A stretch of 64,000 nt of DNA from Adineta vaga (taxonomy: Eukaryota; Animalia; Rotifera), in NCBI GenBank assembly GCA_021613535.1, contig CP075495.1, positions 14,880,001 through 14,944,000 of the forward strand, in the 5' to 3' direction. Below are positions 59,257 to 64,000 of this stretch, one piece after another. The translations under genes were made by a program, and so were the position numbers. The number at the start of each line of letters is the position of its first letter. Position 1 is the stretch's first letter. Under the pieces are notes generated by a model. That model did not search any database, had not been told where the DNA came from, and saw only the letters and a program-made list of their open reading frames with translations.

Positions 59257-59721
59257 CTATTTCGATGCTACAATTTCGTAACTATGACGTAATTCAGAAT
59301 AATAACTTAAACTAGCAATAATTCCATACATTTGTAATATAACTAAATATCCAGTTAATGAACTAATCACAATTATGGTTGTTTTTCGTATATCCACAGG
59401 AAAACCTGCACGCATGAGAATAATTAAAGAAACAGCAGTGATTTCAACCATTATACCAACAACGAGAAAAATAAAAGCAATTCGAAAGAATAACAATCTT
59501 TTTGTACAAAGAAAACCAATCATAATATGAAGAGTACCAGTAATTAGAATATATACTGCTATTCCACCAATATAGTATCGACCAATATCACTAATACGTG
59601 ATCCATATTGTTTGTAACCTTCATTTGTATTATTTATGAAATGAGCAACAACAGCTAAAATAATACCAGTTAAAATATATATGACGAGAAATACCCAAAA
59701 AAATACACGTTGACAGTACAT
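59257..59721 (-). CDS. Small four-transmembrane protein (only intact family member in the window)
   Basis: Single-exon 154-aa ORF with four hydrophobic segments. Broken paralogs lie at 44427 and 54399. Confidence 0.75.
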   Translation of the reverse strand: MYCQRVFFWVFLVIYILTGIILAVVAHFINNTNEGYKQYGSRISDIGRYYIGGIAVYILITGTLHIMIGFLCTKRLLFFRIAFIFLVVGIMVEITAVSLIILMRAGFPVDIRKTTIIVISSLTGYLVILQMYGIIASLSYYSELRHSYEIVASK

Positions 59722-59909: not shown

Positions 59910-60700
59910 TTATGTAATATAAGGAAGAAAAATGTTTATTTCATAATAAATCTTCAGTAATGCACAAACAATAGATACGACATGTATTCTGATAAAAAAA
60001 ACTTGTTCGAATTCGTGTTCAGTTAATCCTGTTTGTTTTTTCATACTCATATATATACAAACAAGTTGTGTAAAAGTTGAATTGAGTCTATCAACAGGAA
60101 AATATGATGCAAAAAGACATCGGTCTGAACCAAATACATTTAATGTATATTCAATATAAGTTCGAAGTAATTCCAACGTCAACTTATGTTGAAACATAAC
60201 TAAACCATTTAATTTACATAATATATTTGGTTGTTGTGATACTATAGACATACCTGCTGTCTATTTTTCAACTGAATTGAAATCATAAAGCATATCTAAG
60301 TTAAATTTGAGAATAATAAAAATGTTTGGATATTGACGTACAAGTTGTGCAACGTATTTCATTTGATGTATTAGGAAATTAAATCCATTCTCTCTATCTA
60401 TCATTATAGTTAACACCTTCAAGGTGAAATAAACCGCTCGTAGGTCACAATACAGGGTGAGTAAATATATTATGCCAAGGAGCACATCTAGCAAAGTTGA
60501 TACAAAAGTAAAGCGCATAAAAGAAGGGGTCGACTGTATTATTGAAATGAGTCGTTTTATTCGAAGAAAGAAAAGAAAAACTCAGATCGGAGCACGTCTA
60601 TATATACCTCCTTCTTACGTTAACTTTCTTATTGGTGGAAAGAATGAAATCAATGTAATATCTAATATGACAATTGAGTCAATGTCGATCATTTCACGTC
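59910..60700 (-). pseudogene. Amidohydrolase-2 (TIM-barrel metal-dependent hydrolase) pseudogene, bacterial-like
   Basis: PNILCKLNGL...YTLNVFGSDRCLFASYFPVDRL resembles the FGxDRxMFxSNFPVD motif, with upstream QLVRQYPNIFIIL. Frames are broken and no intact N-terminus was found. Confidence 0.7.
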
Positions 60701-61627
60701 ATTTTGTTAGTTAATAGTGATCAGTGTCTGTGTCTGTGAACGTATTCGGACAGGCACATTCTCAAACAAGATTTCAATTGGCAACTTTTTTATATTGCAA
60801 ATCCATACAGTAATCTTTAGCAAGTTTACGGCAATGGTAATATTTTTCAAAAATCCAACGTAATTATTGTGTTGTTATAGCTACTCAAGTGAAACACGCC
60901 CGACCAGATCCTCTCGGATTCTGACGTAATCCAAGCCGTGATACTAAGGCAGATAATATAGTAAAATATGGTCGTATCGTGAGCGTATGCCACCGTTTAC
61001 AATTCCCGAAGCAAGATGTTCTATTAGAATTTATTTATATGTAAAGTATGATTTTATTTTTTTTAGTGTCCAAATGTTTGAGATACGCATCCTATTTTTG
61101 TAATCAAAATATATCAATATGTAGCTCGAATATTCAACATATCAATTACTGATTTGGTCGAAATGATCATCAACAGCATGAAAAAATTATATGAATTGAA
61201 TTGACCTTACCAAAAGGTTCATAATGCCGTTTTGCCATTGATGTATCGTGGACTTTCAAAATAAATAAAATTTCTAACATTTCATTTACATTAAATATTA
61301 CTATGAATATTTATGACTGTGAAATTTTTTATCTACTATAAATCATCCATGAACAAATACAATGCTACACTTCTTCTCATAAAAAAAAAACAGATGAAAT
61401 AACTTTTTATATATAAGTCCATTCTACATAAAAAGATAAGAAAGCAGAACATCGCTGAATTACTCTTGGATAAGCCGGAAATGCGTTAAATGTGATTTTT
61501 CTTGTATTTGTTTTTGAAAGTGATACTAGAGATGATATACTTATATATAGGACAGTTTCGTATTACATTTTAAAGGAAAAGCATTTGCAACAAGTATAAA
61601 ACGCATTAGTAATAAATCAATAAACTG

Positions 61628-62548
61628 TTATTCAAATAAACGAATAAGTAAACCATATGGTATAATAGATGATCGCACTATAGTGAAATATTCGATTTCA
61701 CTATTAGGAATAACAGGACATAAACGTATATTTTTTTTATCTGCACCAATCGTTTCCGATTGAATTTTATATGTTTGAGGCTGCTGACGACATTGAATGA
61801 CACTTTTAGCTTTATATACTTTTCCTGAAGTTGAACGAAAAGGAACCGCATTACTGTAAACATCACAACCAGAATATGCAATAGTTGGCGATGTATAAAC
61901 TTCAAATTTATCAGGAATATGACCGTCACCTATACCAATACGATCCCCACTTATTGTTTGATCTCCTGGAATAAGAAATTGATGATGTTCTATAATCGAT
62001 TTTGCTGCTTTAGGACTAGTACCATGATAACTTACAATCCATTTATCCCAAATATTTTCCACTTTTGCTTGCGCTTCGTCAACATACAAACCAAAACGAA
62101 CCCAACCACGTGGAATAACATATTTCGAATTTCCTGCTGTAAGAAAATCTCGGCTAGTTACTGAATAACAGTTTTTACAATAACATCTATTTTGTTGTCG
62201 ATTGAAAAGTTTTTTTGAAATTCCTAATGTTAACATATACTCTAAGCACAAAAAGAAATAACCACAAGAATTTACTGTTGTAGTGCTTGGCGAACGAACT
62301 AAACCTGCTGTAGAATGTGCTCGTCGATCTATACCAGTTCGATGTGGTAGGTCAGTAGCTCCTTCAAATGTTCGTTTAGGCGAAGAGAATGATAGGCCAG
62401 GTTTTACAGGTGAATGTGTTGAAGCAACGGCTGTGGTATTGGAAACAAATTGTCTATCACATTTACATGTGAGACAATACCCAATTCCATTTGATGGTGG
62501 TCGAATAAACGATTTCGATACTTTACAAAAAGTACATTCATATAACAT
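61628..62548 (-). CDS. Soluble NEURL4-type (PARP-like) ADP-ribosyltransferase domain protein with N-terminal CxxC/CxxC zinc ribbon
   Basis: RCYCKNC, YVIPRGWVRFGL, WIVSYHGT, VYTSPTIAYS, VIQCRQQP, EIEYFT and IIPYGLLIRL follow the NEURL4 C-terminal domain pattern in order. N-terminal CTFC...CLTC. No NHR repeats. Confidence 0.8.
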   Translation of the reverse strand: MLYECTFCKVSKSFIRPPSNGIGYCLTCKCDRQFVSNTTAVASTHSPVKPGLSFSSPKRTFEGATDLPHRTGIDRRAHSTAGLVRSPSTTTVNSCGYFFLCLEYMLTLGISKKLFNRQQNRCYCKNCYSVTSRDFLTAGNSKYVIPRGWVRFGLYVDEAQAKVENIWDKWIVSYHGTSPKAAKSIIEHHQFLIPGDQTISGDRIGIGDGHIPDKFEVYTSPTIAYSGCDVYSNAVPFRSTSGKVYKAKSVIQCRQQPQTYKIQSETIGADKKNIRLCPVIPNSEIEYFTIVRSSIIPYGLLIRLFE

Positions 62549-62943
62549 GATAAAAGTATTAAAATTATATTCAAAATCTAGAAATAAATAACAAAATCTT
62601 TCACCATCATGATTTATTTTTAGGAAAATTTCGAAATTATGTCATTTTCTTCACTGAAAATGATCTTATGTCAAATGTGATCATCTATTAATAATGCTTC
62701 ACCGAAAGAAAGAGTAAAATATCTTCCAATATAGTTAGTTGGAAATTTTGTCTTCGATACAGCACATGTTATATATAACTTAAGATTTTGTCTCAGTAAC
62801 GATATGCTGATAAGCATCGGTAGTTACAAAATAAAAAAGCAAATGTTGACAAATCTGTATGTTGCCGAGTGAAGTCGATAAGACAATCGCACAAGAAAAA
62901 ATCGTGGAATAGAAATACACACTGATATACAAAGAAACAAATT
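62549..62943. promoter_or_regulatory. Probable bidirectional promoter and 5' UTR region of the divergent ART pair
   Basis: Only 395 bp separate the two divergent ATGs. Inferred from geometry only. Confidence 0.45.
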
Positions 62944-64000
62944 ATGCCATCAGTTGATTTCTCAAATATCAAAAATGAAACATTATCTCCTACTAATTCA
63001 AATAAAACTTTTGAAATAGAGAGACCTTTACAGACCATGACACCATTATCATTCAAAGTACTAACAACTACAGGTAAGATTTTCGCCGAAAATGATGATT
63101 TATAAAAGAGATTTATTTATTGATTTAGCACAATCACCATCACCACGAAATGGACTCAGTGGTGGTCAAATTGCTGGCATAGTTTCTGGTGTCATAGGTT
63201 TTTTTATTGTATTTGCTTTAATTTATTATTGTTATCGGCGACAAAAACGCCGTAAGTTAGAATAGTATATTTGCTCGATTAAAACTCATATAAAGTTTAA
63301 TGGAGTTCAGATAAACCATCTTCATCAAGTCCAGTTACTCCACCTGCTAAACCTTCGTAAGTATATAAATATAACTTCATTATGTTATTTCTTATATTCA
63401 TACTGGATTTGTCTTTAGTCAGCCAAATCCCATTGTATCACCTCCATCAGAACCGCCAATAGCTCATACGATACTTCAGTGTAGGCAACCACTCTGTGAA
63501 GAATATCTTAAAAGATTTAAAATTCCAGATGCTTTCTTTAATAAGAAATATGACAAATGTTTCTGTAGAAAATGCCATAGTCCATCAGATAAAAAAGGTA
63601 CATGTGGACATTGGTGCAATGAACTACATCGTTGGACTCGTTTTGGTTTAAGTATAAATGATGCACATGCAAAACAATGGAAAATTTTTCGTGATTGGAA
63701 GACGAGCTATTATGGAACAACATCGGATCGACTATTTGCAATTATACGTAATCGTTTCGTTCCATTGGATAATGATCAACTTGCTGATGGAAAGTTATTT
63801 ATTAGTGGACATGCCGATAAGACACATTGTAACACATCACCTTCCCTAATGTGTGCCAGTCAACCGAAGTTTAGCGCTCCCTCGAGATTTCGAGCACCCG
63901 ATGGGAATAATTACAACGTTCAAGTAGTATTACAATGTAAACAAAATCCAGATACAATTATTGGTGATAAAAGTGCAGCATCTTCCACCAGAGGCATCGT
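62944..64000 (+). CDS. Single-pass membrane protein with cytoplasmic degenerate NEURL4-type ART domain (runs off the window)
   Basis: Exons 62944-63073, 63129-63251, 63311-63356 and 63419 to beyond 64000 splice in frame (all gtaag...ag). The product has a Ser/Thr-rich N-terminus, TM GLSGGQIAGIVSGVIGFFIVFALIYYCY-RRQKR and a Pro-rich linker. It then reads KCFCRKC...RWTRFGL...WKTSYYGT...CNTSPSLMCAS...VVLQCKQNP. Confidence 0.78.

Follow-up and report, generated by a model that had tools for sequence, protein, structure and literature searches.

Near one end of the 64,000-nucleotide stretch of Adineta vaga DNA analysed here (the window) lie two divergently transcribed genes that encode ADP-ribosyltransferase (ART) domains of the NEURL4 class. 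Gene 1 encodes a soluble protein with an intact predicted active site, and gene 2 encodes a membrane-tethered paralog (the partner) in which the corresponding site is degenerate. The pair is real, conserved, and apparently undescribed, and the sequences suggest an old, bdelloid-wide, two-gene module. Pseudoenzymes commonly regulate active relatives. In the mechanism that we propose, a short shared promoter region would co-express the soluble NEURL4-class ART and its tethered paralog; the partner, with its remodelled NAD+ site, would be a non-catalytic regulator that sits in the membrane with the N-terminus outside and the ART-like domain in the cytoplasm, where it would most likely bind the enzyme, hold it at the membrane, and restrain or direct its activity. 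We would give an even chance to the core of this proposal, namely that the two genes are co-expressed and that the enzyme is bound, and thereby positioned or held in check, by its tethered partner. Co-regulation and physical contact are putative, as are a role of the pair in defence or stress and the recruiting, restraining, or decoy function that the initial annotation had suggested for the partner.

Two NEURL4-class ART genes in divergent orientation

The start codons are at 62548 (-) and 62944 (+), with 395 bases between them (Table 1). Gene 2 has four exons and an intact frame that reaches a TAA stop 67 nt beyond the window end; the four-exon model translates exactly to a database protein of 315 aa (P0061). 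Both genes are covered by contigs from three runs that we guessed to be RNA (X1-X3) and that give presence and splicing, not expression level; the intergenic stretch is nearly bare. The contigs over gene 1 (61458-62578) are pieces without any splice joint. That gene 2 is a pseudogene was rejected, as it is intact, spliced, and has a dN/dS below 0.35. One low-depth X2 contig uses an alternative acceptor at 63295 in the intron 63252-63310, which adds an in-frame stop on the reference sequence, so that the product would be TM-only. Differences between the reference and the other strain represented by the RNA-like contigs are mostly non-synonymous (8 versus 2 synonymous in gene 1, 10 versus 5 in gene 2), contrary to the between-species pattern, at low depth and in small numbers. 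Two GATAA motifs between the genes (62809 and 62877) are held at near-constant spacing relative to the gene 2 ATG in five species (-123 to -135 and -64 to -67); such conservation is seen near gene 2 only and in pair 1, the pair of the window, only.

Table 1. Features of the gene pair and of related loci. Positions are those of the window unless a locus is named.
Feature	Position	Strand	Description
Gene 1 CDS	61628..62548	-	Single exon, 306 aa (P0001); putative zinc ribbon, Ser/Arg-rich linker, NEURL4-class ART domain
Gene 1 N-terminal C4 zinc ribbon (putative)	62465..62536	-	C5, C8, C25, C28
Gene 1 ART domain	61631..62269	-	Model pLDDT 92; structural and sequence matches
Gene 1 H175	62024-62026	-	Catalytic position by alignment
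Gene 1 Y218	61895-61897	-	Catalytic position by alignment
Gene 1 Y225	61874-61876	-	Catalytic position by alignment
Gene 1 E286	61691-61693	-	Catalytic position by alignment
Intergenic region	62549..62943	.	395 bp; candidate bidirectional promoter
Gene 2 exon 1	62944..63073	+	Ser/Thr-rich N-terminal segment, two N-glycosylation sequons, no signal-peptide-like stretch
Gene 2 intron 1	63074-63128	+	Outside contig cover, as is exon 1; orthologs have the same exon layout
Gene 2 exon 2	63129..63251	+	Single TM helix, then basic residues; donor 63252 in contigs of two runs
Gene 2 TM helix	about 63170-63235	+	Residues 58-79, hydropathy 2.5
Gene 2 intron 2	63252-63310	+	GT..AG; skipped in RNA-like contigs
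Gene 2 exon 3	63311..63356	+	Pro/Ser-rich linker; both flanking introns skipped in one X1 contig
Gene 2 intron 3	63357-63418	+	GT..AG; skipped in RNA-like contigs
Gene 2 exon 4	63419..64000, then 67 nt past window	+	ART-like domain
Gene 2 Y198	63711-63713	+	At His position
Gene 2 N238	63831-63833	+	At first Tyr position
Gene 2 C245	63852-63854	+	At second Tyr position
Gene 2 V294	63999-64001	+	At Glu position
Rotaria pair-2 partners without TM helix	L052:4361-5112 and L055:641-5515		Gln for catalytic Glu
Third ART beside pair 3	L056:4452-5178 and L061:5593-5763		Metagenome contig and Didymodactylos

The domains of the two proteins share 31% identity across 146 aa (E 9e-22). Sequence searches against Pfam and PDB returned nothing useful for either domain (in gene 1, Pfam gave zero matches for the zinc ribbon and the ART domain alike), so the class assignment rests on profiles and folds. 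Confident AlphaFold models were obtained for gene 1 (pLDDT 92) and for gene 2 (pLDDT 89, from an input alignment that contained enzyme-type rows). The top 17 matches in a structural search were PARP-family ART domains for both models, among them PARP16 for gene 1 (Z 10.6, rmsd 3.3, 139 aligned residues) and PARP10 for gene 2 (Z 10.9, rmsd 3.2, 139 aligned residues), and Foldseek matched the gene 1 domain to PARP4 (E 8e-5). Both domains, as modelled, fold as PARP-type ARTs.

A profile search at E 0.001 recovered 1657 clusters, among which are Lingula and Glandiceps proteins that contain NHR and bear the name NEURL4; two matches, P0174 and P0180, have both this name and the PF07177 domain. Gene 1 aligns with the C-terminus of Lingula NEURL4 over the whole domain (33% identity, E 8e-41), and gene 2 matches the NEURL4 C-terminal domain with E 5e-21. 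NHR repeats are absent from both N-termini, which are too short and of different make-up. Alignment with NEURL4 along the full domain places both in the NEURL4 class of ARTs, while neither protein is a NEURL4 ortholog. In amphioxus, the same ART domain is joined to LRR, ZU5, Mind-bomb SH3, and ARM modules (P0099, P0162, P0190, P0211).

In gene 1, the H-Y-E triad and the stacking Tyr are complete (H-Y-Y-E), as they are, in the form H-(Y/F)-Y-E, in 188 of 237 family domains. H175, Y218, and E286 sit in predicted strands, their equivalence being given by motifs and strand order, not by atom superposition. NEURL4 requires its HGS and ELEW motifs for activity in vitro (PMC8932523), and the gene 1 equivalents of both are intact. 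From these residues we infer that the gene 1 product is an ADP-ribosyltransferase enzyme. The Cys pattern of its N-terminus predicts zinc binding; the CxxC...CxxC motif also opens the enzymes of pairs 2 and 3 (described below), giving a C4 ribbon motif in all three enzyme lineages, and the N-termini of unpaired paralogs are unlike it.

The initial annotation had described a divergent pair with ATGs 395 bp apart and a series of shared motifs, all of which lie where it had placed them. It had further ascribed a single domain to both genes, likened this to the NEURL4 C-terminal ART, and called gene 1 active-looking; the pairwise and profile matches, the predicted fold, and the intact H-Y-Y-E positions bear out each of these points. 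Its proviso that the TM gene should be transcribed and unbroken beyond 64000 also holds, given the introns skipped in RNA-like contigs and the downstream TAA.

Linkage and descent of the pair in bdelloids

We found 12 head-to-head loci in Adineta, Rotaria, Didymodactylos, and one metagenome (species named as in the protein sources), which fall into three paralogous lineages (pairs 1 to 3), with start codons 217-888 bp apart where measured; the initial annotation had proposed that related rotifers be searched for conserved linkage, and it is indeed present. The partner was found in all seven look-ups that started from the enzyme, and the enzyme in three of the five that started from the partner. 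Pair 1 was recovered in all five sources examined (A. ricciae, A. steineri, R. socialis, R. sp. Silwood2, and a metagenome contig), the gene 1 ortholog being head to head with a TM partner in each. Public annotations merged this partner with the adjoining gene in two species and left it out in one. A genuine fusion with GH43 was rejected, since a stop codon closes the partner frame and the GH43 gene begins separately, with a start codon and a signal-like N-terminus; the fused models of A. ricciae and R. socialis are probably in error.

GH43 and S1/P1 nuclease genes are syntenic with pair 1 as well, so pair 1 by itself is ordinary microsynteny. The GH43 neighbour, which lies beyond the window (L010:4342-6049), encodes a secreted protein with EGF and GH43 glycoside hydrolase domains, is single copy in A. 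vaga, and keeps its synteny with the pair and the S1/P1 nuclease across Adineta and Rotaria. On the other side, window 59257-59721 (-) encodes a 154-aa multi-TM protein without a Pfam match, whose A. ricciae ortholog (71% identical) is also beside the enzyme, and 59910-60518 (-) holds a split or decayed amidohydrolase gene in the form of two short frames, of which one weakly matches Amidohydro_2 (E 8e-6).

The stronger evidence is the recurrence of the pair in several lineages, beyond pair-1 microsynteny. Pair 2 has the same layout in the A. vaga genome (C3:4756143-4758402, with flanks known for 1.5 kb only) and occurs in A. ricciae, R. magnacalcarata, and R. sp. Silwood1, where the partner gene has a 4-kb intron and the pair survived the intron expansion. 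Two loci carry pair 3, one on a metagenome contig and one in Didymodactylos carnosus; at both it is followed by a third ART, tail to tail, which contains the His and derives from the pair-3 enzyme clade. No flanking gene is common to pairs 1, 2, and 3, nor to the four pair-2 loci. Both A. vaga members of the enzyme clade and both of the partner clade are paired, and none of the paired-clade enzymes examined lacks a partner-clade neighbour. Two intact solo partners have no enzyme within 5-6 kb: one, in R. magnacalcarata, has a mariner-like transposase remnant upstream (L059:3794-4300) and then an unrelated gene, and the other has zero genes within 6 kb. Enzymes that had the neighbour in every case examined and partners that are sometimes alone fit restraint of the enzyme by the partner, on few cases.

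In a tree of 70 sequences, the partners form one clade (support 100/99) and the paired enzymes all fall in another (97/93), with the other A. vaga paralogs outside the latter. The enzyme and partner clades each recover pairs 1 and 2, with a solo gene among the pair-2 partners; for pair 3, the grouping is firm in the enzyme clade and weak in the partner clade. Origin of the pair by local inverted duplication was rejected (forcing the pair-1 genes together gives an AU p of 3e-6). An ohnolog relation between the two A. vaga pairs was likewise rejected: their contigs (2 for pair 1, 3 for pair 2) are not a homoeologous couple (PMC8494291), assuming that contig numbers equal chromosome numbers, and the flanks are unrelated. 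The tree is most simply read as a single origin that predates the divergence of Didymodactylos from the rest, followed by copying of the whole unit.

For pair 1, dN/dS is about 0.16-0.36 in the enzyme and 0.18-0.33 in the partner, rough values with dS near saturation, and these estimates indicate that purifying selection acts on both genes; the partner changes 1.3-2.6 times faster than the enzyme at non-synonymous sites. The A. vaga genome holds at least 39 matches of the ART family (paralogs L003-L042 were examined), with fusions that include MORN repeats and Cys-rich repeats. Decayed paralogs are found at C5:5465350, with an in-frame TAA, and as fragments at C3:14.64 Mb and C2:15.07-15.09 Mb.

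Neighbouring genes separated by under 1 kb are prone to joint copying and relocation regardless of function, and the two genes could be linked yet functionally independent, brought together by an ancient rearrangement, kept together by a short shared upstream region that is hard to split, and employed in separate jobs. We consider this rather unlikely. The syntenic neighbours of pair 1, the intact solo partners, the many stand-alone family members in bdelloids, and a TM version with an intact His that exists without any partner (P0035) would all be expected from it; less so that each of at least two unit duplications left both genes intact and under purifying selection while other copies decayed, and that every paired-clade enzyme examined adjoins a partner-clade gene.

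Active site and membrane tether of the partner

All four catalytic positions are replaced in gene 2 (Y-N-C-V), its D-loop is shortened, and it is missing the QxETIGA loop that is present in every enzyme-type member and in NEURL4. The His-to-Tyr change, the shortened D-loop, and the loss of QxETIGA are common to all 14 aligned partners, together with several new invariant residues. Beyond these, the decay is graded. The partners of pair 3 and Adineta pair 2 retain Y-Y-E after the His-to-Tyr change, and the Rotaria pair-2 partners have Gln at the Glu position. Both tyrosines are lost from the pair-1 partners, where the positions vary among N/E/T and C/H/D; their Glu is retained in four of six, the exceptions being A. 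vaga and A. ricciae. The resulting series is Y-Y-Y-E, Y-Y-Y-Q, Y-T-C-E, and Y-N-C-V. Replacement of the His by Tyr also arose beyond the partners: one further bdelloid-type clade and a choanoflagellate protein show it (P0103, P0214).

Loss of the His marks inactive ARTDs (PMC8932523; PMC8568172), and the gene 2 product is probably catalytically inactive, judging by its residues. The term pseudo-ART used in the initial annotation is apt for the degenerate site with its invariant Tyr, less so for the partners at large, as the decay is graded and most orthologs keep the Glu. Because the partner Glu is mostly kept while NAD+ residues are lost, the partner might complete the acceptor site of the enzyme: the pair would then be an obligate two-component ADP-ribosylation switch of animals, made from a single domain family, in which the membrane-anchored pseudo-ART holds its paired active ART and gates it or completes that site, acting in defence or stress signalling and multiplied as pair-specific units. 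We regard this elaboration as unlikely.

More improbable still is that the partner is itself an enzyme, or an NAD+/ADP-ribose binder, with an altered site, so that two co-expressed enzymes would serve different compartments. Apparent pseudoenzymes have sometimes proved active (discussed in PMC7955679), and the idea is most plausible for pairs 2 and 3, where both tyrosines are kept; the Glu is present in pair 3, Adineta pair 2, and four of the six pair-1 partners. The fully replaced site of A. vaga gene 2 argues against it, as do the Gln of the Rotaria pair-2 partners, the absent His, and the free drift of the pair-1 Tyr positions, which is expected without catalytic constraint.

In most partners a single TM helix follows an N-terminal segment of 19-61 residues. 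The helix is preceded by N-glycosylation sequons and usually followed by basic residues, which implies an N-out, domain-in topology without a signal peptide; we infer from this pattern that the ART-like domain is cytoplasmic. A signal peptide and a domain were both looked for in the segment before the helix, and neither was found, and this outer segment is not conserved between pairs. Two Rotaria pair-2 partners have no TM helix, and their N-termini, MGSS or MGSC, possibly provide a lipid anchor through putative myristoylation or palmitoylation. The conserved feature of the partners, as far as their sequences indicate, is a membrane tether, not a receptor. The initial annotation had cast the pair as a candidate sensor/effector system; the sensor role finds no support, and the short, unconserved outer segment argues against a sensor of the receptor type. 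No ligand- or effector-sensing domain, of the kind that characterises paired NLRs, was found in the outer segments. Sensing may take place through the partner's cytoplasmic domain itself.

Guard/decoy immunity, on the model of head-to-head sensor/executor NLR pairs and with the fast-evolving membrane partner as bait for a parasite effector whose disturbance of it would release the enzyme, is the most doubtful reading: it draws on the faster change of the pair-1 partner, on the fusions of domain relatives in other animals to LRR, ZU5, and ARM, and on the proposed descent of NEURL4-type ARTs from conflict effectors (PMC3417536), but lost catalysis also predicts faster change, positive selection was not seen between species (dN/dS well under 1), a receptor-like outer domain is absent, and ARTs are unmentioned in the text of a pathogen study (PMC11258130).

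The reading that we favour, binding of the enzyme by its tethered partner, bears on the question of how the activity of NEURL4-class ARTs is triggered and targeted. Small single-domain proteins, three natural pairs, and graded active-site decay make binding and activity of cognate versus non-cognate combinations directly testable. If true, it would add a candidate signalling or defence module in animals about whose immunity little is known.

Comparison with known systems

A literature search that covered few subscription journals found neither NEURL4-class ARTs in rotifers nor pairs of this kind, and, within the same scope, no ART regulated by an adjacent, dedicated inactive paralog of its own family. 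Paired NLRs (RRS1/RPS4, RGA4/RGA5) are head-to-head paralogs, one of them faster-evolving, that are inherited as a unit. The rotifer genes share the head-to-head paralogy, the faster-evolving member, and the joint inheritance, but lack NB-ARC/NACHT, LRR, and integrated domains. PARP16 is a tail-anchored ART of the ER with a single TM helix and a cytoplasmic domain, and it is catalytically active. It ranks first or second among the fold matches of both models and resembles the partner in being a single-TM ART with a cytoplasmic domain; however, it is active, its TM helix is at the C-terminus, the identity is 12%, and it has no partner gene.

NEURL4 (the de Souza and Aravind class; PMC8932523) is similar over the whole length of the domain, including the Cys-rich start and the HG(S/T) and E(L/I)E motifs. 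In contrast to NEURL4, which has 1000-1500 aa, the bdelloid proteins have about 300 aa, are without NHR repeats, and belong to a large family; a TM-anchored, His-less paralog or a gene pair has not been described for NEURL4.

PARP9-DTX3L is a head-to-head, interferon-responsive pair near PARP14, whose complex, with an inactive ART, regulates the active ART PARP14 (PMC11251020). Like the rotifer pair, it is divergent and closely spaced and includes an inactive ART domain; unlike it, PARP9 is paired with a ubiquitin ligase, there is no membrane anchor, and the ART class is different. Its products also form a demonstrated complex, whereas contact between the rotifer products is putative. ZAP-L/PARP13 has an inactive, membrane-targeted ART domain (Y-Y-V) in which the residues at the triad positions still matter (PMC8568172). 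It resembles gene 2 in the Tyr for His, the Val for Glu, and the membrane targeting, but it has a C-terminal farnesyl anchor, RNA-binding fingers, and WWE domains, and no paired active paralog; the likeness is convergent, not orthologous. PARP9-DTX3L and ZAP-L each share part of the logic of the rotifer pair, and neither shares its architecture.
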